From: Lepidodermella squamata
Lineage: Eukaryota; Animalia; Gastrotricha
Direction of reading: 5' to 3'
DNA: 64,000 nt
Assembly: GCA_047495785.1 (NCBI GenBank)
Contig: JBLDXI010000020.1
Span: 1,426,001-1,490,000 of the forward strand
The notes below the pieces were generated by a model. It ran no database searches and was not told where the DNA came from. It worked only from the letters and a program-made list of their open reading frames with translations. Of the stretch, positions 5,510-58,335 are shown in pieces. A program made the translations under genes and the position numbers. Each line of letters opens with the position of its first letter. The first letter of the stretch is position 1.

Positions 5510-8500
5510 TCACGAATGCGCTTGCCTGGCAATGTGTAAAAAGAAGTCGACCTTGTCCCGACAAGCAGCGCCGCACATGTTGCACTTGTATGGATCAAGG
5601 AAACCATGGTAGCCCATGTGAATCGTGTACATAACCACGTCTCGGAACGCCATCTCACAGTGATTGCATCTGGTTAAATAAAAAAACATTGATTCTTCAT
5701 TCCTTCAAAAAATTGCAGAAACTTACTCGAAGTTGGGCGATGTCGAGGTAGTGGGTCGAGAAGCTTGCCTGACTGTTGCAGATGCTCCAGCAGAACCCGG
5801 CACATTGGAAGACGATTGACGACGGGAGCCGTTGCTAGCTTCACTAGCTTGGCCCGGCCGCGATTGCTGCTGCTGCAGCAACGCCGCAGCGGCAGGGTCG
5901 AGGTGCGACTGGACTGCCCAGTCATCGATGCGAGAACCAGCTCGTTGCGCGAAGCCTTCCTGGCCGAACTGGTCGCCCCAGCCGTTTTGCAACTTGGCCT
6001 GTTTCGCCTCACTGCCAGTCGCAGAGCTTCCTGAAGTGACGCCTTCGCCATCACCCTCACTGCCTCCACCACAAGACGGGCCTTGCCGCAATGTGCTGAG
6101 TTTGACCGCTTTGCCCTTACGCGCCCGCCTCCGGCCATTAGCATCGCCATTCGTTCCAGAGCCGGATCCCGACCCGGATCCACCCGAAGCCGGGGAGCTA
6201 GGGTCGCCGCTAGCCAGGTCACGCCGGCACAGAATGTCGAGACCAGGTCCGCTGACGTCGTTGCCGGTAAGAGGGGCGTCGTTTGATGACGATGCCGGGG
6301 TGTCGGTTGACCGAGACACCGAGCTACCCGATCCACCGCCATTCATTCCGAGCGAGGGTGACGACCGGCTTCGGCTATCGCGGTAACTTCCGCTGCCCGA
6401 GCCTGAGCCGCCGCTTTTTGTAAGATCAAGCGGCCACGGCGCGGTTGAACCCGGTGGCCGCGCGACACCAGGTTGCTGACCAGCGAGAAATTGACTAATA
6501 GCAGCGTTTTGCGCCGCCAACGGAGAACCGGTTGAAGCATGACTGCCGCGCCGCTTGCCTGACTGCTGCGCTGTTTGCTGCATAGCCGGCGGTAGCTGCA
6601 TTCCGGGTGGAAGACCGCCCAGCATTGCCGCCATAGCGTTGCCATTCCCACCCGGGAACTGCCCGCCGGGTAACATGCACTTGTTCAGCTCAGACAACAC
6701 ATCGGGTGATACGCCAAACGCGCGGAATAAATCGTTGTGCTCAGATGCATGCACCTTGAAGACGTGTTGCATGATCAGAGGCCAGGAGGGAGCCAAAAAG
6801 CCGCAAGTATTGCATTTTATCATCGTCGCCTGTTGCCCGTTTCCGGGTACAGCCGCAGCGCACATACTCGCCGGCATAGTCGGCTGGTTCGGAGCTTGAG
6901 GACCCATCATCGCGTAGTAAGCACCCATTAAGGAGGCCAGAGCGGCTGGGTCTTGGTTAGCCTCACCCGAAACCAGCCGAGACATAGCCGAAGCCATTTG
7001 AGGTGGAATACCTCTAGACGCCATCGCTGCAACGGTGGTTGCTGGGTTGACTAAACCTTGGCCCGCCACAACCGGGCTGTCTTGCAGACCCGGAAAACCA
7101 GCCATCGCCGCTATGGGCAGACGAGGCATACCGGTGCCGTTGCCTTCCATCAATCCGCTACCTGCGCTTGAACTGCTAGCAGCGCTCGAGCCGATCTTGC
7201 TCGGCATGGCGGACGGTTCGCCATCATCGTGGTCGTCGTTATCGCCGTTTCCATCGTGCTTCATGTCCATATCTTCGCCGTTTGGACCGAATAAGGACAT
7301 AGATAACGGCAGGCCGCTCGGAGTGCCGGGGTCATTCGTGCCCGATTGACTGTGCTCGCCCTTCTCGTCGACGACTAGCGACCCGTCCGCTGTCATCAAA
7401 TTCGACGCGTGGTGGTCGTATTTCCTAAGGTGCAGCTTGAGACTATGGCAATACTAGAGAAAAATTCACGAATATTAAACCATGAAATGATGACTCAATT
7501 CCGCGACAAACCTTGGTCGCATATGAACAATCGGCACATCGGTATTGATAAACGTTAGTATGCGATTTCATGTGAGAATTCAGCATAGATTTGTTCACGC
7601 AGCTATAGTTGCACTGTAAATCATCAAAAATTATTTCAAAATCTGGAATAGTTGTTGCCAAACAAACCTTATTGCATTTGAAAGGCTTCGACCCAAAGTG
7701 ATTGCGCAAATGATATTCGAGGTGGTGCTTGTACTCGGTGACGAACGGGCATTTCGGGCATTGCAAAAGTTTATCCTCCTTAATGTGAGCACGCGAGTGT
7801 TCCCAGAAATCGACTTTACTCGTCGCCGTGAAAGAGCATTGTTTACAGCGGTAGTTTTTCGGCCGCCCCGACCGCACAACCTTAACGGCGCCCGAGTAGT
7901 TTGTTGGCGGCACTTCGCTGTGAAAGTCCTTGATGTGCCGTTTTAACCGGCCCTCGGTCCGCGAGGTGTAATCACAAAATTGACAAACGTGCTCGAAATT
8001 GTGCGCAGAAAACGCGAATTTCGAATTACCGGAGCCGGATCCTTCGTTACTGTCTTCCCCACCCGCATTCGCCCCGCTACCACTTACACTGCTGCTCGAG
8101 GTCATCGGGCCCTGGGCACCGCCTGGGAAGTTCATACCGCCATCATTATCGTGGTGGTCGTTGTGACCCCCGACAGAACAATCCATAGGACCACCTTCAC
8201 CCATTTCATCACACTCAGGGCTAAGAGGACCGGCATTCGCCATTGGCATGATCATCGGGGTACCGGACAGGGCTAAAGAATGGCCACTGCTATTCGAAGT
8301 GGCCGGGCTGCCACTGGGTGACTCGGGGTGCGGACTAGCTCGCGGCGACGGGCTTTCTGACAGAGCTCGATCTGTCACCAGGGCGCCGATCGCGTCACCG
8401 AATGTCAAAGTTGCAGCCGGTAATTTGTTTAACAAAGAATTCGCCCCACTCGGGCCGTTTTGAAACGGGGTCGACTGAGCCATGGGCGGCGGACTAGTCG

Positions 8501-9795
8501 CGTTCGGACTCGGCGGCCTCGACGACCCGTTTTTCATGCCATTCTCTTGAATAACCGGACCGCCGTTGTTTTCATTCTCTTCAATTTCCTCCTCCCCTTC
8601 GTCTTCACTTTTCTCCTCCGCCTCGTCGACTTTAGGCGGCAAGATGGGAGGAGGATGTTCGGGTTCAATCGGGTGTTCCTCAGACTCAGAATCACTGGAT
8701 TGGCCGTCGTCGTTGCTGTTAGGTAGCGGAATATGCTGAGGCTGCTGAAGAGGCTGGGGCGCTTGGGGCTGGGATAACGGAGCGACCGGATCCGCCTTAA
8801 CAATAACGCTAGGCATAATCGGTTCCTCGATCACTGAAGACTTCATAATTTCAGGAGTGGGTTGAAGCATTGGAGAAATCCGCTGTTGTTGTTGCCCTGT
8901 TCGAAATAAAAAGAATTAACCTCAAGTAATTTTATATTTGAAATATGCACTAACCTGAACCATTAATTCCAGAATATTCGTTGCCATTAACCATGTTTAC
9001 CGAGGGTACTGATTGAGGAATATGAGGAAGAGGGGCGGGCTGTTGCTGCTGCTGTTGTATGACTTGCATAGGAGGGACAGGAGACTGGGCTGGAACCGAG
9101 GTATTGGTCATCATATAACCGCCGTTGTAAACCGGGTTACTAGGCGGCGGTTGCTGCTGCTGCTGCTGAGGTTGAGGTTGTGATTGAGGTTGAGGTTGAA
9201 ACGAGGTGAATTGCGAGGTAGGAACACCGTTCGACGCCGGCGTTGACGAGGTTGTGGAGTATTGCGGCGGCCACATGGTGTAGCCGTTCGACTGGCCGCC
9301 GTTTTGGGGCGACGTTGTCGCCTGCTGTGGCTCCATGTGACTCTGCATGCCGAAATACGGCTGTTGACTAGTAGCTAGTGGAATGTTGCTTCTAAACGAG
9401 CTGGGCTGGGTCTGCTGCGCCGCGACCACGGGCCCATTTTGAGACTGATACGGCGATGGCACGGTGTTCGTGCGTTGAGGGGTCGGGCATTGGTACATTT
9501 GCGGCTGGGGAGCGCCGTTGTACGGACTCCGGCCCGTTGCCGCGTAGTTCGAATTTGCGGTTTGATAAAAATGGTGATATTGCTGAGGTAACATTTGACT
9601 GGTTTGATTGGCGTTAACGCCGCAATGCATGCCCATGCCCATAGCCGCGACCAGGGGCGGCACATACGGACCACCGCCCGACATGCCGACTGCGGATTGA
9701 GGTAAAACTACTCCCTGACTGGTAACGTCGCCTTCGCGTTGCCCAACAGAACCGTTCGGAGCAACTGCGTTAGTTCCGCTGGTAATACTCGTCAT
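5510..9795 (-). CDS. hb: Hunchback C2H2 zinc-finger transcription factor, ~1352 aa; exons 9795-8955, 8896-7668, 7613-7512, 7453-5727, 5669-5510
   Basis: Diagnostic central fingers [61 protein letters not shown]-terminal pair [21 protein letters not shown] and [23 protein letters not shown]. Four GT-AG introns of 54-58 nt; exon lengths sum to 4059 nt, in frame. Confidence 0.95.
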
Positions 9796-20804: not shown

Positions 20805-22559
20805 ATGACACAGCCTGCGTCATTTTTATCGACAACCAAACGCTCAATTTTAACGAATGCCACGAAAGTTGCATCGAAAACGACGATTGCGAAAGCATCT
20901 CGAGCTTCGTCACTGCTATCATCGACAGTTTCCCGAACAACTCGATCTGTTACTATAGCCGCTTCGACAACACCTATAACCGTTTACAGCAATCGATTTA
21001 TTACCGGAAGCAATGGCATCGCTTTCCCGGGCAACAATATGACAGATTACGGGTTGAACTCATTCGATTGGAGTAATACAACACAAGTCGAGACGACTGA
21101 ACAAGACGTATCATCTCCTTCCTTCAGTGATGAATTCCGAGGATTCCTCATAGCCTGCTACACGCTCTCTTGCATCTTGGCCGTTGCCGGCAATATCATG
21201 TGCGTCATTGTTTTCGTCGAACAACGAAGAAGATCAAACCAGCCTGAGACTTTCACATATCTTATCAACTTGGCGGTCTGTGACATTCTCATGGCCGTAT
21301 TTTGCGTAATTAATAGCATGATTTTGTTGCAAAATGCGAATTTTCTCTTCTTATTGCAGATTCCTTTCACTGCCATCAATTTTCTCTATCAATGGATCTT
21401 CCCACGTATGATTTTTCTCATTATTTGCAAGTTGATTTATGGGAAATCTTTATTTTTCAGATTTTCTTTGCCCATTGGTCTTATTTTGCCAAATGTGCTT
21501 CGTCATCGCCTCAATAGGAACAAACATATGCATATCCTTGCATCGGTTAAACGGCATTTTACGTCCTCTAGATCTATCCTCTCACAGTAAGGCTTCCAAA
21601 AAATTGACCTGCCTTACACATTTTGGAAAATTACTTAGGTAACCTGGTGACAACCAGTATTTTAGGAGTTTGGCTTTTAGCTGCATGCGTCAGCACGGTG
21701 AATTTTGCAATCGGTGGCGTCAATCCGCAATCGAATCAATGCGGTGAAATCAATTTTATCGAAGGCTACGAAGCTTTATGGCAGTACGCCGTCAGTACTT
21801 TGATGCTTTTCTTGCCCATGGTTTGTCAACTTTTTATGCCGCGAATTTCGAAATTATTTTTCCGAAACTTTAGACTGTGATCATCTTAGTTTATAGCGGA
21901 ATCGGATACATTTTGTTCTGCAGACCTAGTGGCTTGGGACCCGTCCCAACTGCTAATGTTACCAAGCGTCCGAACTCCAAAGTTGCCGTGAAAGAGGATA
22001 GACGACTTGACGACAGAAGAAAGGTTTTTACTTCGCATTGAACTTTGATTCATTTTAATTAGCTTTTTCTTAGCTCATCGTCACCTTATTTTGCGTTGCA
22101 TTATGCTTCTGTATTGGCTGGAGCCCTATACACATATTTTTTATCGCCATAACAATGGACCCGTCCCTGCAAGAGCATGAAGCTGCTCTGTACATTTACG
22201 CGCTTTGGTAAGTATAACGCAGCCTATAAAACAATTTTATTAATATTTCCCTAAAATTAAGTCATATCATCGCGATGTCCCACTCTTTTCACAACCCGGT
22301 GGTCTACCTCTGCAGCAAACATTTTCGGGTAAGCCCTAAATAGCTATCATTGTTGAGGAAATAGGAAATTATCAATATGCCACTTTAGGATACTCTGTTC
22401 AACCTTGGTAGAGGAAGGCGGCGAAGAGCGGTAACCGAAAGGATCAGGAGTGGCACACATCACGAGAGGTCTTGCCTCAATCAGTCCGAAATCACGTCAT
22501 CAAACCACGTCACGCATGAGCGCAATAACATGCGCCTGAATAGCCATTCTTCAAGCTGA
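20805..22559 (+). CDS. Rhodopsin-family neuropeptide-type GPCR (loosely RYamide/luqin/GPR83-like), paralog 1, ~8 exons
   Basis: S/T-rich N-terminus; TM1 GN; TM2 YLINLAVCD; TM6 FCIGWSP; TM7 CHIIAMSHSFHNPVVY; short GT-AG introns. Confidence 0.85.
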
Positions 22560-23248: not shown

Positions 23249-24888
23249 ATGAATGAGCATGTGAACCTGAGCGATTTAATTTCAACAACTCTAATAACGG
23301 GTAGTGGCGAAAGTGCGCCCCTGGAAGCCCATGACAAGGTGATTGGGGTGAACATTTCCCAGCCTGAAGCCGCCCAATTCAGCGATGATTTTCGAATTGT
23401 ACTCATAACAATATATTCCCTACTCTGCCTCCTCTCTGTGATGGGAAACATTGTCAGCATTCTCGTTTTTCTAAAGCAACGGAAGACTTTGCGACAAAAT
23501 GACGTACGCATCCTGCAGCTCTTCCTTATGAACATCCATTCCTTACGGCTGTTTTAACAGATATCACTCTATCTCATCAACTTGGCTGTTTGCGACCTCT
23601 TCATGGGACTGTTTTGTGTAAGAGGCTGATTTTAATATTTGAGCAACTATAGCTATAATCGTTTTCATACTTCTGACAGATTCCTTTTACAGTATATGGT
23701 TTATTGGACGAGTGGTCCTTGCCGGGTAAGTTTCGCCTTTGAAACAATTCCCGCTGTATTTTGTCCCATACCGTGATAGAAACCTTGTGCAAAGCGGTGC
23801 TGGCTGGCCAGATATTATTTGTGATGGCTTCTGTTTCAACTAACGTTGTGATAGCGCTTCAAAGGCTCAAACTAATAATGGACCCCCTCGATCAGTCATC
23901 TCACAGTATGATTCTGCCTAAGATCCTATCATTTACACTGTATACACCGATATTTTATCAAAAGAACTTCGCTTGCTTGTCAGTTTTGCAGCAATATGGC
24001 TGACGGCATTGGGGACTAGCGGGATCGAATTTTCAGTCGGTGGCGTCAACGAGCACAAAAAATGCAGCAATATAGGCAGCTACAATGCTCCAAACGAGAA
24101 CATATGGCTGTTGGCATGGGTGGTATTCGTACCAATCCTAACCCTGCTCGTTCCCACTGTAATTTTTTGTGACAAGTTCCCCAACTGGGTTGAGGAATTA
24201 CTCTGATTTTCGAATTCAGATAATAATTCTATCTGTGTATGGATGGAGCGCCCATTTACTGCAACATGCATCGAACGAAACGCCCCTGACCACATCTTAT
24301 AACGATAGAGGAGATGACAAGAAAAGGGTTAGTAGGGCCCATTGAAAGGTTTCATATAAGGCTCTATTTTTTCCTTAGGTAACAATCACGTTGTTCTGCG
24401 TTGCTGCTTGTTTTTGCATAAGCTGGATTCCGTTACACCTATTCAGCATTGTCACTTTGGTATTTCCTGAATTGGAACGTTCTCCTGTAGCTAAATACGC
24501 TTTCATTATATGGTAAATTACTTATACCTATCGAATATCATTCTGTAGTTCCATTTATTTATATGCCAGCCACGTTGCTGCTATGTCGCATTCGTTCCAG
24601 AATCCCATAATATTTCTTATATCAAGTCGGCAATTTCGCGTAAGTTATCAAATGCTCTAAGCATCGCTGTGTAACATCCCTCGTTTTACCAGCGTACCTT
24701 GGTTCTCCTGCTATCAAGGAAGAGCCTCAAAAAAGGCTTTATTTTACGGTTAGGACATTGGAACAGGGAAGAAGTATGTACCTAACCTGCACTATTACTA
24801 TATTTCATTAAAAATAATTATCGCGCAGAGATCGGCCTCCATCAAGCGCCAAATGCATAATCGATCGTACGAGCTGAGCTCTGTTTGA
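23249..24888 (+). CDS. Rhodopsin-family neuropeptide-type GPCR, tandem paralog 2, ~10 exons
   Basis: TM1 MGN; YLINLAVCD; FCISWIPLH; CHVAAMSHSFQNPIIF. Intron positions shared with the upstream paralog. Confidence 0.85.
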
Positions 24889-25214
24889 AGAAGCAGATTC
24901 TTCACGGCCGATACAGCGTCTAGCATGCGGAAAATTATCTAAGCAACTAGCGATGTTCTCTGCATTCTTTGTTTTATTTTGTGAGTTGTGCCTGAGAACC
25001 TTAAGGTCTCCTTAGAATAAGATGCTCGATGAATAAATTTCATCAGGGTTGAGATCGCTTCGAGAGCTTGTGTCGTAATGTAAGTGAATGAATGGAAAAT
25101 AATTAGCTCCGCCATTCGATTAGCCCGAGTTGTATTTTGCTAAAGGAAGTCAGTTCATTATGCCTCTCATTGCTGATCACAGAGTCACATAAGCTAGGCA
25201 GGATCAAGTGATGT

Positions 25215-25439
25215 TAAGTACCGGATGCTGAACTTCTGACTTCTCCATAATAATTTTCTCGCGCCGTCGAACCATTTTTTGCAAATGCTAAATATAGTAA
25301 CAAAATCTTCAATGTATAGTGATTTGCTGTAAATCTAAAGCTAAAAATAGAACGTGTTGTTACTTTTGGCATTGCAAAAAACGGATCGACGGCGCGAGAA
25401 AATTATTATGGTGATCAGTAGCTCTGCATCCGGTACTTA
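25215..25439. mobile_element. Fold-back MITE-like element with ~90-bp imperfect inverted arms and TA ends
   Basis: taagtaccggatgc...ccataataattttctcgcgccgtcga...tttttgcaa is mirrored by ttgcaaaaaa...tcgacggcgcgagaaaattattatgg...gcatccggtactta. Confidence 0.8.
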
Positions 25440-25503
25440 CTTGGGCAGGATGACCAATCAATGACGATCAATCCCTTTACTGAACTCTATCATCATCCAG
25501 AGA

Positions 25504-25841
25504 ATTTCTTAGATATTCATTATCAGAGAATTATACTGGGAAAATATTCCCTGAAAAGAATGCATGGCCTAAAGGTTGGCTATTATTGGGAGCCACAAGC
25601 CCGTGAACTGTGGTCTGCAGTTTCTTGAAAAAGTTGCGCCTTGAAAAAGTTCAGAAAAGACGTTGCTGGTGTGTGCTTGTGTGCTCTGACATTAACTCGC
25701 CAGTAATGACGGAGTATTGTGGCTTGGTTAAATTGGTCAACTACCGCTGGACAATTGTTGGTCCACTGAGAAGAACGCAGAACGTAGAACGCAGAAGGCA
25801 GAACGCGCAGAACGCAGAACAAAAAATAAAAAAACATGCGG
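25504..25841. repeat. Left copy (338 bp) of direct repeat flanking the LINE; putative giant target-site duplication
   Basis: Identical by eye to 30995-31333 apart from one A in a homopolymer run. Confidence 0.95.
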
Positions 25842-25963
25842 CCAATGCCAATGCCAATGATTTATTGCCGAGACCAGTCGACAACACCAGGTTATAAAAA
25901 TATAGAAGAAAAAAGGAAAAAAGCAAAATTAGGCAGATATAACACAGCAGCTTTGCAGCGAGG

Positions 25964-28900
25964 TCAAGTTGAGATGACTAATTTGTTTTTCAAAAGCAGA
26001 AGTTGTTCTAAGGCATATTTTAAATACGCGTCCCTTTCGGGGTCATCTGATTCGGACATGTTGAAGAGGTGAGCGAGCTTCTCTTCGGTGTAGCCATTCC
26101 TGGTGCTGGAGCGAAAAGGTACCATTTGATCAGCGGTGGTATGACATTCTAGCAGGAGGTGGCAAATTAGCCGCCATCCCCGGCCTTTTCCCTCGAACTG
26201 TAGTGGCTGGTGGCAGGCAAGACACACGCCCGGTCGTTGGAACTGTGCGGGCTTGAAGAGAGAATCGCATCGAATTGCCAGTAGCGTCTTCGCTGCTGTC
26301 AGTGGTAACTGGCTGAAATAGATTTCCGCTGCGCCTTTAGGCCTATGGGGTCCGAAAAACAGGTGGTCAGCGGGGTAGTAGGCCGCCAAAGAGTCGACAA
26401 GGCGTTGCTCTTGAGCGAGTAGGAGGTGCCGTTGAACCAGCGACGTTTTAATGTGCGCCGGGATTTCGAGGCGGCCGACTACGTCCAAGTCAAGCTCGCG
26501 AAGGAGTTTCTCCGCGCGCTGCACGAGGTTACGAGCTGTGTCCCCCATCCACTGCATAGCAGTGAATGCATTGCCCAACAGGCTGTGTCCGCTTCGTTGA
26601 GTCGAAAGTAGTGGCGCAGGCAGGCAACTTGGTGCGCCGTTTTGGGTGGCAGCAGGTTGAAGTCCCGCAAAAGAAGATCGTGCTTTGAGGCCTGCGGCAA
26701 ACCCAGACATTTCTTTGCGAAGCGAGCGTGATCCTGCAGCTCCTTCGAACCCGCGAAGAGCCCCCATAACTCGGCGCCGTAAGTGTAGGCGCCGAGCGCA
26801 CAGCCGTTGTAGAGGGCACGCAGGGCTGGCAGCGGGAACGAGCGGATATCCTCGAACATCGTAGGTATGACGGCGACAGTTCGCTGCAACTTGCTTCTGG
26901 CTTCTTTCACCGCTTTTCGATAGAGCAGGCGGGAATCGAGCCAAACGCCAAGGTACTTGAATGAGTCCACCCGCTCCAATTTATCACCTTTGAGGTAGAA
27001 CTCGCCGGCGGTGAGCGACGGTGACTTTTCAAACGCCATGACTTTGGATTTACTCACATTGATCGTGAGACCATTGTCTGCGGCGTAGCGTTCAAGCTCG
27101 TTCAAGTACAGCTGCAGTTCGGCGGCCGACTCCGCGACAATTGCGACGTCGTCGGCGTACAGAATCGCCCGGATGATTCTGTGACCCAGTTGTAGGCCGC
27201 GGCCGCCAGTCCGGTCCAGTCGATCCACCAGGTCATCGATGAAGATGCTGAAGAGCAAGGGCGACAATGGGTCACCCTGCTTGACCCCGATGGAGACAGG
27301 AAAGGACTCGCTGAACTCGCCGTTCGAGAACACTACGGCGTTGCAGCCCGTGTACATGTCGCCGATGACGCGGACGAAGGCCTCGGGGACGCCGCGCCGA
27401 CGTAGCTTGCCCAGCAGTAGGCGGTGCGAGACTGTATCGAAGGCAGCGCTGAAGGCACAGTGGACAGCCTCGTGTCGCAGCCGCTCCAGGGCGAAAGCTA
27501 CAGCGGTGTGGATGACGGTTACCGCGTCGATAGCAGAGGCGCCAGGCACAAATCCGAATTGCTCCGTCCTCAGTGGGGAGAAAAGGGCTAGCCACTTTCG
27601 TAGCCGTTTTTCGCACACCCTAGAAAATAATTTCGCAACGCAATTTTGTAGACAGATTGGCCTGTAATTCTCTACATCCGACCTGTTGCCCTTCTTGTAG
27701 ATGGGGCAGATGATGGCATCTTTCCAATTAGGCGGGAACGCCCCTTCGCAGAACACCCGCGTGTAGAGCGAGGCCAGGTACGGGGCGAGTGATTCAACGT
27801 TGTCCCGGATGTCGGCGAAAGACAGGCCGTCAGGACCAGCGGCCGAGTGGGCGTTGCAGGCTGAGAGGCAGGCACGCACTTCGTCTTCGGAAACCGGTCC
27901 CACCAGCATACCCTCTTTTGTGGGCGCTGTCTCGGCTGTAAGCGGTGGTTCCCCTTTGCTGTAACTTTTCCACCGCCAAAAACTGTCCGTGTCCGATGAG
28001 TAATATCGCGGCGGGCAGAGGTAGCGGTCCCAATAGGCCATGTCGCGGAGCGAGGAGAGGCTCACCGGTGTTTCTCCCGACAATACACGCCATCTCATAG
28101 CCATGTCGTCTGGCGCTAGCTTGAACTTGAACAGGTTAGTTGTCGCCATGCCCCAGAGCGAACTAAGCGGTGGGATCTTGCAAGCCGGTGAAGGGGGTAC
28201 TGCCTCGACAGGCGGGGGAAGGATGCCTTGAACCAGTAGTCTGAGAAGGTAGGCACGATAGGCAACAGCCGGCGGACCCGTACCATCCGGTTCACGGACT
28301 TTCTTCTGCCAGATCTTTGTCGGCTCCCGAAGAAGTTCTTCGAAGACTTGTTGATCCTCTCGCGAGGGCGATTTCGGGGAGTCGACCGGTCGAAGAGTGA
28401 AGCCGGTCGGGCGCTGAGCGAGTGTCCTCACCCCCGTAGGAAGCCGGGGGAATCGTGGGGCGAGAGGCTTTGAGCAAGCGACCGTGATTGCTTGGAGTTG
28501 CTCGGCCATCACCTGGGCTGAGTGGAAAGAGGCACAATCAAGTTCTGAAGAAAGTTTCACAGACAGCTTAGCTTTATTTATGCGAAGTCTGGTAGGCACC
28601 TGAGGGACCGATCTAACCGCGATGGTTGCGGTTATCCGGGCGTGATCGGTGTGCTCAGAGCACCTCTCAACTTCGAACGCGTGGATGGACTGGGCTAAGC
28701 TGACCGAGGCTAGGCCGTAGTCGATCACCGAGTCGCCGAGAACTGAGAAGTGGGTGTATGACCCGCGGCTGTCGGGCTCGTAGCGGCCGTTGAGAACGAA
28801 AGTGTTGAAACGCTCGATGAAAGAGACGAAGCGGCTGGCCTCGTGGGTCCCATAATCGAGACTGTGGCGTGCTGGGATTGACGAGCAGTCCGGTACGTCA

Positions 28901-29586
28901 CGTAGGTTGCCGATGCGGCAGTTAAAGTCACCGAGGATCAAGAGTTCCGCCTTTCCACCGAGCTTGAGCAGTGCGTCCTCGATTTGACTTTCGAGATTCT
29001 CGAGCAGATCGACGTGCTTCTGCAGGGTGGAGTCTGTAGGCACGTAGGCGAAGACCAAGAGGAAGACAGCCCCGTCGGGCATACACCAGGAAAACATCGC
29101 TGTGTAGGCGTCCTTGTAGTGTATTACCAGGCTGTCGACTAGTTCGCCCTTGATGAAGATGTTGTAGCCGCCAGACTTCCTTCCACCGGCGAGCGACACA
29201 CCGTCGACTTCCACGATCTTCTCGTAGCCTTTGACGGTCAGGTGAGGGGCTAGGCCGTGAGTTTCAGCCAAGGCTAGCATGAGGAGACCGTCGACTGCCT
29301 TGCACAGGTCGGTCACTGGGAAAGACGATGCGCCTTGTACGTTCAGGAAGCCGAGACGGTGTTCGCCGATGGGTAGGACCTTGTGGGGAGAAAGGTTCAG
29401 AGCAGTATTAAAATGCCTAAAGGACTTAGCTATTCTTTTGTGAAGGACTCGGTCCCGCCTAGGTGGCGCCACCTCAGGAGGATCCGGCAGTAGTGGCTGA
29501 GGCGGAAGAGATGGCGCCGGCGGTTCGGTCACTTCAGTCGAGCTGTTAGGTATAGCTAAGTCCGGCTGCGAGCTGCTGGTTGATTC
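25964..29586 (-). pseudogene. LINE ORF2 (APE endonuclease + reverse transcriptase), disrupted in this copy
   Basis: Frame is open from directly after the ORF1 TAG to 26479. The C-terminus continues in another frame to 25964 (frameshift near 26585). RT motif A reads CAFSAAFD and lacks the first catalytic Asp. Confidence 0.85.
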
Positions 29587-30897
29587 CTACTGGGAGCTGC
29601 CGCCGGCGCGTGGGCGCCTCGGAGCCGTGATCTTCGGGAAGTGATTGTCGAATTCCGGGTCGTCTGCGCGAGCTACGGACACGACTTCTTCGCCGTCAAC
29701 GTCGTAACGGACTCGTAGTAGGACCTTCTTTCCTCGTATCACCCGTGCGCGCAGGCCACGTATTTCGTAGTAGTTGGCCTGATTTTCGTCCACGGCCTCT
29801 CGACAGTAAGCTGACAGCTCGCGTTCTGCTTGCCATACGTTGCCGGGCTTGAAGAGCCGAATGCGGAGACCTGGGCGTAAGGCGTCGCGTATTGCTTCGA
29901 TGTTGTCGCGGAGAAAAGCGCCATTAGTTCGGACAAAGACGACGCGGTCCTTTTTTTCCTCCGGGCCGACACGATGACAGGACCAGGATCCGGCCTTTTG
30001 TAGGAGTGGGATAGCCTGGCCAACTACGCCTCGGAGGTTTTCCTTCGCTGATTCAGGCAACCCTGCTAGTACGGCGATGCCCTCGCCTCGTTTGGGGTAG
30101 TGGTCGATTTTTTGTCGCCCAGAACCTGACTGTGAGGGCTGAGCAGGTTTTTTCGATGCCGGTTTCTGGTTGCTAGGAGGTTCTTTCTTCTTTTTCGATG
30201 TGGCTTCCGGGGGATCATCCTTCGAGCTCTTCTTCGCAGGCTGTGCACTGCGTTCTTTCGAACTTTGCTGATGTTTGGCCGTTTTCTGGTTCGCATCGTT
30301 GTTTGGTTTCGACGACCTGCCTGCTTTTCGGGGCTCAGGGGGTTCGGATGAGTGAGTCATCGAAGATTCCTCGACAGTCTGGACGCCGAATGAGCGACGG
30401 CACAGCTTCTCCTGCAGCAGTTGCTCCACCTGCTCTTGGCATTGCCGTGTCAAAGTCGCGGTGTCCGCATAGAAGTGAATGCGGTCGACCTCGGCTTGTG
30501 ATTTGAACTTGCTGATATCGTTCCGCATGACGGCGATATCACCGAGCGCAAATTCTCGGAGGCTGTCGATTGCAATCTGTAGTGACTGCAGCTTGTCGCT
30601 GAGCGCAGCCCTGGCACGACGTTCTTGATCGAGCTCGCGTTCGAGCCGCTGTTCCCATTCAGCGTTTTTTCTCGCCAGTAGGAGCTCGACGGCTTTGACG
30701 ACGGCGACCGGTAGTTCGACGAAGGCGCTTTCCACGCGCGAAAGCCGGCACTCACAAGCTGATAGGTTGTCGCAGCCGTACGAATCCCGATTGTATCGGA
30801 GTTCATCGAACTTGCCGAGGATTGATTCCAGGTCGGGGTCCTCGTAATCGTGCGGCGCGGGCATGTCCCATTCATAACCCACGGTGGGGTTTAACAT
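29587..30897 (-). CDS. LINE ORF1 (coiled-coil, K/S/P-rich linker, basic C-terminal region)
   Basis: 436-aa ATG-initiated ORF upstream of ORF2 with a heptad-like helical segment (EWEQRLERELDQERRARAALSDKLQSLQ). Confidence 0.85.
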   Translation of the reverse strand: MLNPTVGYEWDMPAPHDYEDPDLESILGKFDELRYNRDSYGCDNLSACECRLSRVESAFVELPVAVVKAVELLLARKNAEWEQRLERELDQERRARAALSDKLQSLQIAIDSLREFALGDIAVMRNDISKFKSQAEVDRIHFYADTATLTRQCQEQVEQLLQEKLCRRSFGVQTVEESSMTHSSEPPEPRKAGRSSKPNNDANQKTAKHQQSSKERSAQPAKKSSKDDPPEATSKKKKEPPSNQKPASKKPAQPSQSGSGRQKIDHYPKRGEGIAVLAGLPESAKENLRGVVGQAIPLLQKAGSWSCHRVGPEEKKDRVVFVRTNGAFLRDNIEAIRDALRPGLRIRLFKPGNVWQAERELSAYCREAVDENQANYYEIRGLRARVIRGKKVLLRVRYDVDGEEVVSVARADDPEFDNHFPKITAPRRPRAGGSSQ

Positions 30898-30994
30898 TTT
30901 TAGAGATTAACGCTCTACGAAACAAAAAGTAGACGGCGGGGGACTTCGGCGACGACGTCTCCCGCCTCAGAAAATTTAATATTCAATCGCAGAT

Positions 30995-31333
30995 ATTTCT
31001 TAGATATTCATTATCAGAGAATTATACTGGGAAAATATTCCCTGAAAAGAATGCATGGCCTAAAGGTTGGCTATTATTGGGAGCCACAAGCCCGTGAACT
31101 GTGGTCTGCAGTTTCTTGAAAAAGTTGCGCCTTGAAAAAGTTCAGAAAAGACGTTGCTGGTGTGTGCTTGTGTGCTCTGACATTAACTCGCCAGTAATGA
31201 CGGAGTATTGTGGCTTGGTTAAATTGGTCAACTACCGCTGGACAATTGTTGGTCCACTGAGAAGAACGCAGAACGTAGAACGCAGAAGGCAGAACGCGCA
31301 GAACGCAGAACAAAAAAATAAAAAAACATGCGG
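30995..31333. repeat. Right copy (339 bp) of direct repeat flanking the LINE; includes a GCAGAAC heptamer array
   Basis: Matches 25504-25841; array gaagaac-gcagaac-gtagaac-gcagaag-gcagaac-gc-gcagaac-gcagaac near its 3' end. Confidence 0.95.
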
Positions 31334-31762
31334 TGCATTACTTACTTGTTTCATATAATAGCCGTGTATTTTACAAGATGTAGGCTAATTAATGCCAAAA
31401 TAAATGTAGTCATTATTGTCGCATTTTTAGCGCGCATCCTTGACGTTTTGAAGCGCACGTCATCGCTGATTTCAGCCAGCTCACACCGCGGCAAGCGGCT
31501 GGTAGCCGGCAACACGTTAGGCGCAACTGGTTGCTGGTTGTCGTCTACGTCCCGCCACGATGGCATCAAATGTCCTTGGTATTTAAGTGTGCACCTTGCT
31601 TCACCTGCAATGAGTCCATTCGACTTTGGTTGAATTGGGGATTGCACCACCTGTTTTTCGCTTATTACAGGTCTTGCGAATTGGCCTGAAGATGAATGTA
31701 GATTGAAGTTTAAAGTACATGGATTTATTTACAACCGGCATATATCAGTAGATGAATTGTAA

Positions 31763-34435
<2,673 letters not shown>

Positions 34436-35659
34436 GCACCCCGCGAACGATATGACTGAAAAAACTTGTCGGAAATGACTTACTTTATTATTCCTAGTAA
34501 CGATATATTGGGATTTGTGTAACAGATTGTGAGTATTTATCGTTTATCGCGACGCTATGAATATAAACTACCAAGGTATTTATTCGAAGTTGTGCATGAT
34601 AGCCACTGGACGTGCTATTATTTCCGAGAAAATCGGTAATTTATTGCAAATTATCTTAAACACTGGTGGATTGTAATTATATCTGAAAGCTATGACGCTT
34701 GATAAAGTTTACTGCTGCTGGATGTGTTATCCCTTGTTATTTTTTGTGATTTTCGGCGTTGCGTTCCTAAGGTCAATCCTGTGTGACAACACGAAAAAAG
34801 CTGTCAATGGCAATGTCTGGTGGGTACAAATCGCCTATGCTTCTTTAGGCGCGACGCTAAACGTCGTCGTGCATCATGCTATTATTAATATATGTTGTAT
34901 AATAACATTAATTATTGGAAACAATAAAGAATCTACGAAGGATATTCAAGGCTTTTGTAAGCAAGTACAACAACCTATTAGTAATAATTGGCGGTAGTCT
35001 ATGCCGCGAAACAAAAGTAAGAATCACGGCAATATGTCTAAATGGGTTGACAAAGCACCGGAAATTAGGGTGTCGAAACAACGCAAATCGCCGTCACCTA
35101 GCAGAATAACAAAAAATATTTTTATAACGAATCGAAGCCTCCCTAATGTCAAGTAGTGATACGGCTGTGTCGCGCCGGCAATTCGCAAACAAAAACATAC
35201 GGACTGCGTGTTTTTATCATACAGGTGAGCCGCCGCTGGTGTGGGCCGGGCGCCGTGCTTAGACGCTTGCCCAGCGCATCGATTCACTCATTGATCGCGG
35301 CGACTAAGAGGCCGTGTTTGCCGGCGACACGGCGAACAATGTTACGAATAATTATTATTTGTCACCATGAATTCCTGATAAATATACTAGGTACTATTAC
35401 CGAAGCAATGCATTTAATATTATTATTTTTACACTTTACGACACAGAGTCAGTCATCGCATATTTTGATAAAAATCGGCATTGGTATGTACACTTTGTTA
35501 TTACAAGCCCGGCCTTCGCTCGATCTCCTGCCACGGCACTGCCAGCAGCAGGCGTATATTGGAAGTTTCGGGTATATATTGCGGCTACGTTTTATTTCTT
35601 CGGACAAACATCACACGAAAAAGCGCAGCAAATACACCGCGCGCGAGATTATTGGTGAA

Positions 35660-36427
35660 TAGTAAGTTGGTACCCGCAAATTCGTAACGTGATATTTTCG
35701 TACAAACGAGGTATCTTTTCATATCACTTTCGGTGATCTTTTCGTAACGGATTTTCGTAGCAAAATAAATTTTCCCAAATTAATTTTGTGATCTTTTCAT
35801 AACAAATTAAGACGAAGTGGTGATCATTTCGTAACACTTTAAATTAGTGGTCCTTTCATCACAAGTTAAGACGAAGTCGTGATCTATTCGTAACGCTTAT
35901 AATATTGTTCCCTTCAAACACAGTTAAACAGATGATAGACATTAAGGCAGAGTGTTAGCAGTTATTCATCAGAGATAGTTGTATTATTTAGAGTTAAGCT
36001 CCCCGCTGAGGATGAAGCCGTGTTATCAGCATGATTTTCAGCTACATCTACCCTAGCCTTATCCGAGTGTACACGCCCAACATGTATCTTAAGGCCGCGC
36101 TCATTTTTAAAAACTTGATTGCAAATTGTACAACGCATCTTACGCAAAATCACGATGAATGGGCGCCGAATCAGCGAAACCACGGTTTTAATGGCGAGAA
36201 TATTACATCATATCACGCGTTTGCTTCGAAACGATCACTATTTTGTGTTTTCATTTAGGTCCGGTTACGAAAAGATCACCACTTTCGAATTGAAATTATG
36301 ATAATTTATTTTGTTACGAAAAAGTCACCACTTTTAATATGAAAATGTATTGATACGAACTTACTCTGTGCGATAATATCACGTTATGAATAAACCACTG
36401 TACGAATTTGCGGTTACGAATTTACTA
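35660..36427. mobile_element. Non-autonomous TIR DNA element (~770 bp) with subterminal repeats, TGAA flanks and an internal C2H2-finger ORF
   Basis: Left end tagtaagttggtacccgcaaattcgta matches the reverse complement of the right end, tagtaaattcgtaaccgcaaattcgta. GTGATCWTTTCGTAAC-like units recur on the left and inverted on the right. tgaa flanks both ends. Confidence 0.75.
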
Positions 36428-38407
36428 TGAATCGATTATTTACGAAAAAATTCGACCGCTTCGATATATATATTTATATACATATATATTTCCGAGGCGG
36501 CATCATCGCACTTTTTTAAGGGCCGACTATCTGTCGCCACAACACACCCGTAAGTTCGAAAAAGACCTTCGCCATCCTGTGTATAAATGTTTTTTATTTA
36601 TTTTTCGCTTGAAAATGATCGGCGCCGACAAACGATGGCCCGAGCTGATTATTTAGCCGACAAATCGTCCGCCATTTAGCAAGCCCTCATGAATCGCGTC
36701 GCGCGCGCCGCCGCCAACATCACATGGCATACTCGCTATCAATACACGCGCCCGGTATAAAATGCTATGTAATGCGTGTTCTGCTCTTTTTTCAAATTGA
36801 AATACACCGTAGACACCAATATACCAGGCGACGGGCGCGGAAATTATGCTCGTAATGCTGTCTATAATAAAATAATGTCATGTTCTTGCTGATATCGATG
36901 CGAGTCGCATGTGCGGTGTGCCTTTGCTGTATGCACCCACAGATTGATTAGATTTATTTTTTTTCGGAACAAGCCAACACCCACATTTTTAAAACGCCCG
37001 CCCGATAAATCACAACCCGCGCTCAACATTGCTTGAACAGAAATAATATTAGCGAAAATAGCCAATCGTTTCATCACTCAGCGGCATTATTTGTACAGTA
37101 ATTAGGACCGAAGGTTACCACAACTAGCGGAATCGCCTTTAGGAAGCAAATAGCGCAAGATTTTGTCAGAAATATAACACAGCAATAGGCAGACTCGTTA
37201 AACATCACTCCATTATTATCTCCTTATTAGTTTCAGGAAAGAGGTAAACAAAAAAGCATTGACCTATCTAAGTTGAGGCGGTAATCATGCTTGTCGATGA
37301 CAGGCAGAGCCCAGCCGCTCAGGCTTTTGAGCCACGTCTTAAAGTTGCGCGTTAAATGATACTATTCTTGTCTAGAATCGATTAAATCGAGGCAATCCCG
37401 TAGTAATAAGTATTACAAAACTTTTTCACTTTTTTATGTTGCCATTTATTATCGATGAAGAGAGAGAGCACGCTGGTATTGTGGCGCACCGGTTGATTAT
37501 ATTAATTGACTTTTTTATAGACATCCATCTGTTCGTCGGCGTGACATCGATCTTACAATACATGCGCGCAATTCAAGTTAATTTTTCCGCCTTTATTCTA
37601 GTTTTAGCGTCGCGCAATGACTACAGATACACGCAAAACGGCTTATATGCGTTCGCCTCGACATACGACATAACTTTTTACGATCCGCAACTAAAAGTCG
37701 GCAATCGGCCGCCGGCTTTACAAAATTCTGCAGCTTTTGTTATTACATTATTTATTAGCCCCAATCGCGCTGATTCTTATAGTCAATATACTCTGCTCAT
37801 TTCGTCATTCAAACAAATGCCTGATCTCCCCCCATCAGGCCCCCTAAGACGAGACAAAGCCTTTATATAACTAATGTTTTTGCTGAGAGTACACATTTTA
37901 ATTGCAACAAAATATTAGGTTTCTTATATGTCATAATTGATTTTATACCTTATCGATTGTGCCCGCAAAAAGTGGTCGCTCCCGCAACTGCTGCTCCTGG
38001 AGTCTTTTCGTTTCACGATGTCAAGGTAATTTAGAAATAATAATTGATATTCGAAAGAATTTCCTTGGGCAAGCTTAAATTATTGCTGAGAGATGCTAAT
38101 TTACTTGTGAGTAGAAGCTTAGAAATTTAACAAATTTATTGAGCAAATCAGAAATAGTTTAAATGCTTTAGAAATCGAGTCGTGCATCCTATAACTTGGG
38201 TTTATGTTTTATGTTGTTTCGCCCGAGGTTAGATGGGATTAGGCTTGCTTATCCTATTCACTATATCTAACATGAGATAATAGTTTAATTTAGGACCGAC
38301 TTTCAACCGCATTCACAAAAAGATTAAAAATCGTTCGATTTTATTTAATTTGCTACTGTTGTGCTTTCAGTACCTCTTAGTACCTCTTGTACCTCTGAGG
38401 GCGAGCT

Positions 38408-43494: not shown

Positions 43495-46400
43495 TTACTG
43501 ATAAGCGTTGGCCTTGTGCTTCGGAACAAATGTAAAGCCATCGGGAACAGGACCTAGCAGCATCTCGCTGATTTTCACCCAGTCCGAGCAGTTCGGGCTG
43601 GCCATCAGTGTTTCAAGGTCGTCACGGCCGAAATAAGCCGGCGGCCGTTCGTTGATTTTCTGCGGCAAAACCTCAAGCAAACCGATTGGAATGTAACGGT
43701 AAAGGAAGGATTGCCATTCCAGCAAGAAACGGCGCGTAGTTTCAATGCCGCGAGTATCCGAACCCCAATGCTCCAAGCCATAATTCGCGTAACGTTTCAA
43801 CATGTCTAAACGCTCAGATGATCGAATATCCCAGTGGCGCTTTTCGGTAATTTCAGTGAAAATCCACGGTTTAATGAGCGCACCGCGGGCGACAACCACA
43901 TTTCCAATAGAAGAGCCGTCCAGGTGACCGTAAAAGTCCTCGTACGACAGCGTATCACCCACTCCAAAAACAGGGATAGATTTTTCCAAGCCAATTTTCG
44001 CACATCTGAAATGGAAATTTTCTGTGTGAAATTCTACCTTGAAATATTTTGGGAAAAATGCTTTCTACCATCAATTTTCACCAATAAATCGGAAAAATCA
44101 AATTTCACCATCAATTTTGGGTTTTCTACCGTCAAATTTGAGCTTTCGCAAACGCAACGGAAATTGCCACGAGGAGTCGAGGGACGAGGGTCGGTTATAG
44201 GCTAATGTCGGCCTACGGTGCAAATTTGATGAAATTAATATTGCTAGAGAGCCCGGGATGTGCTGCGTCCAATTACATGGTCTGTAGTTAGGTGAGAGCT
44301 ACTTGGACAGGTGAAAAAATTCATCAAAAGTGACCAAAAACGCAAAAATGGCATAAAAATGGCATTTTCTGACACTTTGAGCGATTATTAGGGGCACAGC
44401 AGACTCGAGTTCCTAAAATATTTTTAGATCAAAATGAGCGTCTCAACGAGAAGCATCTTATTATGCAAGAAAAAATTAGGAAGTCAGGTCTGCTGGGGGT
44501 CAAATAGAGAAAAAACCGATTTGCGAAAATCGCATGTTTTTCGTTGAAATTTGTGGTTTTCAGAGTCATTTGACCTTGACATGCATTAATTTTTTTTATT
44601 TTTGAATTGGATTTCAAATAAGCTATCTATTTCAGTCTACCTAATAGCATGTTTAAATTAATTCATTTTTTGCCGCAAGAAAACGCTAATGAATTTGATG
44701 AGTTTTGAGTCATGTGACCGGTTTTAACGTCAAATAGTATCAACTTTACCGAATTTTGTACCCACTACCTGAGCGTTTCGCCGCACCCGGATTTTTTCTA
44801 TGATATATGACAGTCATTTCTTGATGACTAAAATTAGTTTTGAACTATTTTACACCTGGGGCGGATTTTACCTACTAACCGGCCCTCGTTCTTTTGCCAA
44901 CAAAATGGGTTTTCTTTCCAAGAAATCCGACAAGTACCCGCTGGTTTAGCCTAAAGTAACTAAATTGATGGCGATTTCCGTTGCGTTGGCGAAAGCTCCA
45001 ATTTGATGGCAGAAAACCCAAAATTGATAATATTTGAATATTTCGACTTTTTTGATGAAAATTGAGGGTGAAAATATTGGTAGGAAATTTTTCACCCAAT
45101 TTTTTCGACTAACCGATCAACGTAATCCCAGTCTGCCAAGCGAGTATAGCGTTGATCTCTCGTTCGGCCGTGAATCGCAACGAAATCTGCTCCGGCATCA
45201 GCTAACTGAGGCACCAGCTCGTGAGCAAATCGCTTTTCGTAGTTATCACTCAAACCCGTGCGAAGTTTAACCGAAATCGGCAGATTTGTGACAGATCGCA
45301 TGGCTGTTACCACATTCATTAGGCGGGCGGGTCGGGCTGTTAAGGCGGCGCCTTCGCCCTTGGCGCAAACTAAATCGATGGGACACGCGGCGTTGATATC
45401 AATGAAGTCAACGTTCAACTTTTCTGTTATCATTTCAGCGCATCGAGCCATCATGTCCGGATAGCCGCCGCACAACTGCACGCCGAAGCAACGCTCGGAT
45501 GAGTGGCGCTTCAGAAGCGCCCACTCACCCGCGTGGCCAGACAGCAACTGGCCGACCATAGCCATTTCTCCACATGTAACCTCAGCGCCGTATTCGGTAC
45601 AGATGCGGCGAAACGGGAGATTGCCTAGTGTGGTCAAGGGGGATAAATAAGGTCGGCGAAGCATGTCAGCAACCCGAGCGCGACGAGCAGCGGTGGCGGC
45701 ATCGATTTCCAAACCGACACGCGGTTCTTTTTTAGCAACCTCTGGGGCAGGAATCGCCTCAGCCTGGCCTTCAAGTTTTTCCTCTGCTTTAACGCCATCT
45801 TCAAGCTTCGGAGTTTCCTTACTCATCTTCGGATGTTTGCTTTGAGTAGAAGTGAATTCTTTGGTTTTCGGGAATTGCAACGTTCGTTTACGGAGGGCAA
45901 CTTGTAACTCTTTGGTCAAATCGTTATAAGTCGTCTGCGACCCTTGAAATTTCGCCCATTTTTCCTCATCAATCTTTGAACGAAAACTTGTAACTTCCAA
46001 CTGTTAAATAAAAAGCAGTCTTACAATGTTGGTGCCATCTTCATTGATGTGGCTAGCGCCATATCTGCACAACACACCAAATCGGCAACGTCCGAATGTT
46101 AAGAAATTGTAGCAATTTTCTCCAATATCGGCTTGACGTTTCTCCAAATAACCTTTCAAATCATGCGAGTTCTTGCAGCTTTCACCTAGAAAATCGTTAA
46201 ATTATGATATATGGTTGACCATTAGCGGGATAATTAACCATATGGGCATTTATCTTCAGGAAAGCCACGAGCTGTGTATTGACATAATTGGTGCCTTTCA
46301 GCCTTGAAAACAGGTCTATCAGTTTTCCGATTGCGGCCTTTCAGCTTTTCAGGCTTCTTATTATCATCAGCGGGTTGCAGCTTTTCGGCTAAATCTTTTG

Positions 46401-51974: not shown

Positions 51975-52890
51975 TTACATGTTCGGGAGGATAGGTAGGA
52001 ACTCGAGAATATAATGGCGCATTTTGGTAGCAAAAATCAATGTAGAGTAAATACTGGTGATATTATTAGGTAGTGAATTCCACAAAGATGTCAGGCGCAA
52101 AATAAAGGAACAATGCCGTTGTTTGTAGTTCCACTGAGGAAAAATTAATTTATTGTTATGACTAGAACGAGTAGTAGAAGTGGACGGGGGATAAATAAAT
52201 TCATTATGAAGCACAGAAATATGATTATGAATGATTTTGTGGGCTATTTGAAGGTCCCTGAACAACCATCTCTGATGAAGTGATTGAATGTTAAATTTTT
52301 TCAGCCTTTCCAAGTAACATAAAGGAGCAAAGGGAGGAACTATCATTCGAGAAGTAAAAATTTTGAGACACTTTTCCAAGAGGATTTTATCAGAAGCATT
52401 AGTGGGGTTCCAAACAGTTGAACAATACAGGAATAAAGGTAAGACATAAGTATTAAAAGCACGCATTAGAACAGAATTATCTCGCGATACAAAGGAGTTC
52501 AAGATCAGACCGCACATGCGCCTGGCTTTTTCGTAGATATAATTGCAATGAGAGGAAAATGATAATTTGCTGTCTACGATTACACCAAGGTCTTTAATTT
52601 TATATACTGATTCAATAGCGTGGTTCGACACGGTATACGCAAAACACGGATTATTTGAACCTAACCTTAAAACCACACATTTTTTCATGTTTACAGCTAG
52701 CTGATGGCTCAGAAAATAAGCTACGATGCAGTCAATATCAATCTGAACTTGAGAAGGAAGAGAATCAGGCTTCGGGTAAATCTTGACATCATCAGCATAG
52801 AGTTTAATTACACAGTGCTTGACAACAGAAGGCAAATCATTAATAAAAATTACAAATAACAGAGGACCCAGAACACTGCCCTGTGTCATA
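51975..52890 (-). mobile_element. 5'-truncated CR1/L2-type LINE reverse transcriptase remnant
   Basis: QGSVLGPLLFVIFINDL, LYADDVKI, KDLGVIVDSKLSFSSH, YCSTVWNP, LWNSLP. Confidence 0.9.

Positions 52891-54910: not shown

Positions 54911-58335
<3,425 letters not shown>

Follow-up and report, generated by a model that had tools for sequence, protein, structure and literature searches.

A LINE flanked by a 338-bp direct repeat upstream of Sec23 in the gastrotrich Lepidodermella squamata: probably a one-off giant target-site duplication

The length of the target-site duplication (TSD) is characteristic of the species of long interspersed nuclear element (LINE) that makes it: 15 bp for L1, for example, and 5 bp for ZfL2-1 (PMC4245944). 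A class of long TSDs (L-TSDs; >20 bp) is also recognised, and one of 25 de novo insertions of zebrafish ZfL2-2 in wild-type DT40 cells belonged to it, with a duplication of 1,228 bp (PMC2666801). TSDs of L1 are said to reach several hundred nucleotides (PMC1291365), and L1 junctions with tandem duplications of 1-10 kb have been interpreted as large TSDs that arise by break-induced replication (bioRxiv 10.1101/2024.12.14.628481). R9 of bdelloid rotifers has a TSD of 126 bp (Gladyshev and Arkhipova 2009, cited in PMC9977147), and de novo insertions of Dualen-4b_cRei in Chlamydomonas reinhardtii are flanked by duplications with a median length of 900 bp, for which the authors suggest the element's two endonucleases as the cause (PMC9977147). 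Here we describe a LINE with a flanking repeat of comparable size in the gastrotrich Lepidodermella squamata. It lies upstream of the gene for Sec23, in a stretch of 64,000 nucleotides (assembly GCA_047495785.1, contig JBLDXI010000020.1, positions 1,426,001 to 1,490,000, forward strand) that we refer to as ‘the window’; all coordinates are positions within it. An earlier note on this DNA, made from the letters alone, named RTE-1 of C. elegans (about 200 bp) and R9 (126 bp) as the rare long cases, a range that the Dualen-4b_cRei median puts out of date.

The LINE, 5,153 bp long and on the minus strand, fills positions 25842-30994, between two copies of one sequence in direct orientation: R1 (25504-25841; 338 bp) and R2 (30995-31333; 339 bp). 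Repeat search and global alignment agree on this pairing, and the alignment bears out the earlier note in finding a single mismatch, where a run of A at repeat position 317 is longer by one base. On either side of this run the copies are 100% identical in the repeat search (25504-25803 with 30995-31294, and 25821-25841 with 31313-31333). Identity over 338 bp cannot have arisen by chance. The boundaries of the repeat are sharp, because the 30 bases beyond each edge are unrelated on all four sides. By blastn, the window contains neither a third copy of the 338-bp repeat nor a second copy of the internal 5,153-bp LINE; it also contains no N, and hence no gap beside the repeat. We read this arrangement as a recent insertion of a full-length APE-type (apurinic/apyrimidinic endonuclease) LINE by target-primed reverse transcription, with an oversized TSD that is a one-off of the rare long-TSD class, and we give this reading as a whole a probability of roughly 0.68. 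For this copy, the interpretation of the repeat as a giant TSD and not a long terminal repeat (LTR) is supported; that the long TSD is a one-off is probable. The insertion is young, since R1 and R2 differ by no substitution and the open reading frames (ORFs) of the LINE are almost intact. The parts of the locus, including the untranslated regions (UTRs) of the element, are as follows.

25504-25841, no strand: R1, 338 bp, duplicated host DNA at the 3' (tail) end of the LINE
25842-25859, minus strand: 3' tail of the LINE, (CATTGG)3, with AATAAA and a T directly before it
25860-25963, minus strand: 3' UTR of the LINE, with a small stem-loop just 5' of the tail
25964-26590, minus strand: C-terminal part of ORF2, the Cys/His motif region, in a frame that differs from that of the remainder of ORF2
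26479-29532, minus strand: ORF2 main frame, 1017 aa, with a putative APE-type endonuclease at about residues 160-294 and a reverse transcriptase at residues 613-864
29587-30897, minus strand: ORF1, 436 aa, with a coiled coil, a basic disordered linker and a C-terminal alpha/beta domain
30898-30994, minus strand: 5' UTR of the LINE, 97 nt, its 5' terminus ATCTGCGATTG beginning exactly at 30994
30995-31333, no strand: R2, 339 bp, duplicated host DNA at the 5' end of the LINE
31790-32014, plus strand: first coding exon of Sec23, with the ATG at 31790, aligning from residue 4 of human Sec23A (E 2e-31)
32355-34076, plus strand: large exon of Sec23, 573 aa, aligning with Sec23A residues 132-657 (E 3e-174) and matched in Pfam

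Whether the repeat is element sequence or host DNA depends on where the element ends, and this can be decided from its relatives. On the minus strand the 3' end reads ...GGCAATAAA-T-CATTGGCATTGGCATTGG and terminates at 25842, where it abuts the repeat; as the earlier note had correctly observed, the poly(A) signal and the (CATTGG)3 tail stop here. The signal, the T and the tail together, AATAAA-T-(CATTGG)3, span 25842-25866. The last G of the repeat (25841) fits the register of the hexamer, which leaves 1 nt of ambiguity or microhomology. At the other end, the element begins with ATCTGCGA(A)TT, a terminus that it has in common with two relatives. One of these, L003, is a 5,535-bp Logan contig consisting essentially of one whole element; the other, L005, is an 8,423-bp ENA contig (k141_181864) that carries a full element, with an ORF2 43% identical to ours, and both flanks. 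The shared terminus starts exactly at 30994 in the window, at base 1 of the L003 contig, and at position 416 of L005, past an unrelated flank. Its retention at 43-50% ORF2 identity suggests that it may be a functional 5' end, perhaps an initiator or promoter element or a 5'-joining site. The tails are likewise related: the window's AATAAA-T-(CATTGG)3 compares with AAATAAAA-(CAT)3 in L003, (CAT)6 in L004 (a partial copy of an element), and (CAT)8 in L005. Judged by these relatives, the termini of the element match the inner edges of the repeat exactly, on both sides. Since the relatives fix the ends of the element at the edges of the repeat, the 338 bp lie outside the element and are host DNA. 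Neither the repeat nor anything similar to it is present at the relatives' loci, and L003 and L005 have no terminal repeats of their own.

The relatives themselves are distant. For ORF2, a word-indexed protein search reached at most 27% identity, and the reverse transcriptase region alone gave the same few relatives. An exhaustive HMMER search of 1.84 billion representative proteins with ORF2 as query found closer ones: P0141 (50% identical), P0143 (50%) and P0142 (43%), whose 90% clusters have only one or two members each, on contigs of 3-8 kb. The DNA behind these three proteins comprises the loci L003, L004 and L005. ORF2 is homologous end to end with P0141 and P0142; homology of ORF1 among the relatives is in the C-terminal domain. 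An exact look-up of ORF1 found no record, a scan of metagenome contigs found only fragments at 29-38% identity, and no further copy of the same LINE family turned up in the protein, representative or metagenome collections searched. The cluster names of the more distant ORF2 relatives give no informative hint of clade, and a literature search for a CATTGG tail returned nothing relevant. Hebe, from Adineta vaga, was considered as a relative and rejected on account of its poly(A) tail and zinc knuckles. The element represents an undescribed LINE lineage with CAT-type microsatellite tails.

The coding content is that of a LINE. In Pfam searches, ORF2 matches RVT_1 firmly (E 5.5e-34; 118 bits against a cut-off of 29.6) and, at residues 160-294, Exo_endo_phos_2 weakly (E 4.7e-05; 23.7 bits, below the gathering score of 27.4); the latter match is likewise recorded, weakly, for the relative P0142. 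PDB matches of the ORF2 reverse transcriptase to L1 ORF2p and R2 range from E 1e-32 to 1e-26; L1 ORF2p is matched at E 1e-32 and R2 at E 7e-29, and these matches fail to separate an affinity to L1 from one to R2. ORF1 has no match in Pfam. Its structure was predicted from a four-sequence alignment (mean predicted local distance difference test score, 62), and the model has a long coiled coil at 42-169 and an alpha/beta domain at 274-420, with a linker between them that is basic and disordered; the RRM-CTD of human L1 ORF1p (2ldy, 2yko) supplies the best PDB folds, at the weak level of E 2e-3 to 4e-3. Of the features by which an APE-type LINE is recognised, a LINE-type reverse transcriptase, a microsatellite 3' tail and a flush flanking duplication are present, and the endonuclease is a candidate from the weak match. 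Integrase, RNase H, protease and GIY-YIG domains are all absent from the element's proteins in Pfam, and no hammerhead or other ribozyme matches 24000-33000 in Rfam at E <= 1. The repeat begins and ends ATTTC...GCGG, in place of the TG...CA of LTRs; in these respects, too, the earlier note, which had seen neither such ends nor an integrase, proved accurate.

ORF2 changes frame within 26545-26590, in a stretch that holds a G5 run, according to tblastn comparison with the relatives. P0141 and P0142 read uninterrupted across this region, so there the window copy was either frameshifted by mutation or misread in sequencing. Together with the difference in A-run length, the frame change may be a homopolymer error of the assembly and not a mutation. 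Directly 5' of the microsatellite tail is a stem-loop of 6-8 bp, found both in the window (25866-25895, minus strand) and in L005 (5714-5740), which resembles the combination of 3' stem-loop and repeat in stringent-type LINEs; taken whole, the 3' UTRs fold no better than their shuffled versions do (z about 0). The window contains a second reverse transcriptase fragment, at 51975-52979 on the minus strand (RVT_1, E 4.6e-10). We rejected it as a member of the family: at 26% identity to the LINE studied here, it belongs to a different, degraded LINE family.

The host sequence that was duplicated lies next to Sec23, to which the LINE is antisense. The gene-proximal copy, R2, is 457-795 bp upstream of the Sec23 start codon, a position that would place the repeated DNA in promoter or 5'-UTR territory of the gene. 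R1 contains an imperfect (AGAACGC)~7 microsatellite at 25772-25820, together with an A-rich run. A hairpin resembling a miniature inverted-repeat transposable element (MITE) lies 65 bp to the left of R1 (25215-25439), with arms at 25215-25284 and 25372-25439 that are 88-93% complementary. It has sub-threshold Rfam matches to MIR841 and MIR8706, which are plant MITE-derived miRNA families (62.7 bits against a gathering score of 200); with scores this far below threshold, we call it a foldback repeat and no miRNA.

How might the locus have come about? The LINE would have entered by target-primed reverse transcription, in antisense orientation, in the 5' flank of Sec23. From the geometry of the junctions, we infer that the plus strand was nicked first, at the bond joining 25841 to what is now base 31334 (...CATGCGG^TGCATTAC). 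The plus strand, nicked after ...CATGCGG (25841 / 31333), would then prime cDNA synthesis from the tail, a step at which the G at 25841 would allow 1 nt of microhomology. A break in the other strand 338 bp away (...AAGAAAT^TCTCTGG, minus strand), placed on the same geometric grounds, would prime second-strand synthesis. The intervening 338 nt would be carried by both ends, and fill-in would convert them into two copies. For the long-TSD class, such duplications may stem from a distant or non-canonical second-strand break, or from replication-type fill-in from the reciprocal end, to which they have been ascribed; we would not take the spacing of 338 bp to be a fixed property of the element's endonuclease. 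Three points weigh against our interpretation of the locus. The two break sites share no motif, and a second cut made by the element's endonuclease at a specific sequence thus gains no support from them. The case is that of a single copy. And L005, at only 43% identity in ORF2, says little about the family in the window.

Compared with the systems known, the window holds an undescribed LINE lineage that shows an already known, rare integration outcome. The closest parallels are the long TSDs of ZfL2-2 and human L1. They, too, concern a LINE that ends in a microsatellite or poly(A), of the APE type to which the window element probably belongs. In both settings, one insertion has on either side a copy of the same unique host DNA, hundreds of bp long and flush with the element's ends, and other insertions of the lineage have short TSDs. 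Those cases come from cell-culture assays and tumours, whereas the window copy is germline, fixed or segregating, in an invertebrate. With human L1 the element further shares the two-ORF layout, an ORF1 model of coiled coil and alpha/beta domain whose best folds are those of L1 ORF1p (2ldy and 2yko, at E > 1e-3), and a reverse transcriptase that matches L1 ORF2p at E 1e-32; it differs in having a microsatellite for a tail where L1 has poly(A), and its reverse transcriptase is about as similar to that of R2 (E 7e-29). R9 is also a non-LTR element with a flanking direct repeat of target DNA far beyond the usual 5-20 bp. It inserts, however, at a specific site in 28S rDNA, with an identical TSD each time, in contrast to the unique promoter region hit here, and the window repeat is 2.7 times longer than its TSD. 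Dualen-4b_cRei resembles the window element in being a LINE whose insertion duplicates hundreds of bp of host DNA, but Dualen has two endonucleases, restriction-like (RLE) and APE, while the window element shows only the putative APE domain and has an ORF1. RTE-1 of C. elegans, finally, is an APE-type LINE that is reportedly flanked by a long duplication too, of about 200 bp; RTE-clade elements, unlike the window element, lack an ORF1 of such a kind.

The first of the rival explanations is that giant TSDs are typical of the family, its integration machinery routinely breaking the second strand about 340 bp from the first. The earlier note had expected as much, proposing that insertions of this family copy host DNA by the hundreds of bp. 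Each LINE species has a TSD length of its own (PMC4245944), family-wide precedents exist in R9 (126 bp) and Dualen-4b_cRei (median 900 bp; PMC9977147), and no second copy of the family was retrieved that contradicts the idea. By the same token, no second copy was retrieved that could support it, and the one relative with both flanks does not. L005 has 415 bp of 5' flank and 2.6 kb of 3' flank, and the only repeats shared between them are chance matches of 10-18 nt; its TSD is therefore at most a few bases, and it would argue, if weakly, against a long TSD throughout the lineage. (L005 also carries a 5S rRNA gene at 5-124, with an Rfam score of 105 bits; its LINE begins at 416, 292 bp downstream.) The lack of shared sequence at the two break sites in the window speaks against a routine as well, and the known cases are either site-specific (R9) or have two endonucleases (Dualen), neither of which is seen in the window element. 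We regard a family-typical giant TSD as unlikely. In its specific form, that an APE-only, ORF1-bearing lineage, with its ATCTGCGA terminus and CAT-type tails, systematically breaks the second strand about 340 bp away, the proposal is quite improbable. The earlier note had further speculated that the second nick falls about two nucleosome repeats from the first; this finds no backing here, and in the literature isolated long TSDs are a rare outcome of LINE integration. What stands of that note is its central claim, that the repeat is duplicated target and not an LTR, which is upheld by the element's termini, by the origin of the repeat upstream of Sec23 and by the absence of LTR or Penelope hallmarks; family-wide duplication and nucleosome phasing do not stand with it.

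A second explanation is that the duplication was made by the assembly, the 338 bp being single in the real genome and written twice owing to a heterozygous insertion or a contig join. The two copies do differ only in the length of a homopolymer, and the frame change of ORF2 falls in a stretch with a G5 run. Both are typical of long-read error, and some error in the sequence is plausible. Against the duplication itself being an artefact, the window has neither an N nor a gap, and the assembly would have had to form a spurious junction between the exact conserved 5' terminus of the element and the first base of the repeat, a junction that no read would contain were the true TSD short. An artefact of assembly, like a tandem duplication that predates the insertion, is unlikely. 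In the latter case duplication and insertion would be separate events, the LINE having hit the junction of an older tandem of the repeat, or a later rearrangement having copied the repeat. The microsatellite in the region could promote slippage or duplication. The LINE would nevertheless have had to find one precise phosphodiester bond of about 676, without leaving a TSD of its own, and both of its ends are flush with the edges of the repeat. We consider separate events very doubtful, and a single insertion with a long TSD remains our preferred account.

The weakest alternative, that the repeat is encoded by the element (as an LTR, a Penelope-type pseudo-LTR, or a counterpart of the TART PNTRs or TRE5-A modules), has the layout of direct repeat, coding region and direct repeat in its favour and is scarcely tenable, given that integrase, GIY-YIG domain, TG...CA ends and, in 24000-33000 by Rfam, ribozymes are lacking, that poly(A) signal and tail stop at the repeat's inner edge instead of standing at its outer end, that the conserved 5' terminus likewise falls inside the repeat's inner edge, that neither this repeat nor a sequence like it occurs in L003 or L005, and that neither a short TSD nor a tail is found outside the repeats. 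LTR retrotransposons have LTRs bounded by TG...CA, with a short TSD of 4-6 bp beyond them, and an integrase. We rejected this class on the ATTTC...GCGG ends, the lack of integrase, RNase H and protease in Pfam, and the lack of a short TSD outside the repeats. Penelope-like elements possess a GIY-YIG endonuclease, terminal repeats borne by the element and often hammerhead ribozyme motifs; they were rejected since Pfam finds no GIY-YIG domain, and 24000-33000 gives no ribozyme match at E <= 1. TART PNTRs and TRE5-A modules are repeats within the termini of the element and recur in all copies. A LINE with internal direct repeats of this sort was likewise rejected, the repeats here being outside the conserved 5' terminus and the tail, and absent from the relatives.

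Elsewhere in the window, two pairs of terminal inverted repeats suggest insertions of small DNA transposons or MITEs: one at 44110-45028 (60 nt, 92%, with 799 bp between the arms) and the other at 35648-36439 (55 nt, 75%, 682 bp between the arms). Several host genes have long exons. These include the SDHA flavoprotein (885-2594), a C2H2 zinc-finger protein (7443-8870), a weak match to a seven-transmembrane (7TM) receptor (20805-21590) and AHCYL1 (56992-58335). Many protostomes match the AHCYL1 exon at about 70% identity. Only a metagenome protein from ENA sample ERZ27332993, which is also the source of L005, does so at 88%. With this metagenome protein as the nearest relative, the host appears to have no close sequenced relative in the collections searched.

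In summary of what the finding means, none of about 15 billion public proteins is close to those of this LINE lineage, 50% being the highest identity. Were the long TSD typical of the family after all, each insertion of the lineage would duplicate a promoter-sized piece of host DNA, and the lineage would join R9 and Dualen as the third case in which giant TSDs are family-wide, by a mechanism distinct from theirs. It would then offer a new handle on second-strand cleavage by APE-type LINEs, although the precedent would still be that of Dualen and R9. If the duplication is a one-off, the locus shows the rare long-TSD outcome cleanly and in nature, with junctions that are exact at both ends and that help in reasoning about the origin of the second-strand break. 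For the organism, the insertion doubles 338 bp upstream of an essential gene, Sec23, and displaces one of the copies by 5.5 kb, changes that could alter how Sec23 is regulated.

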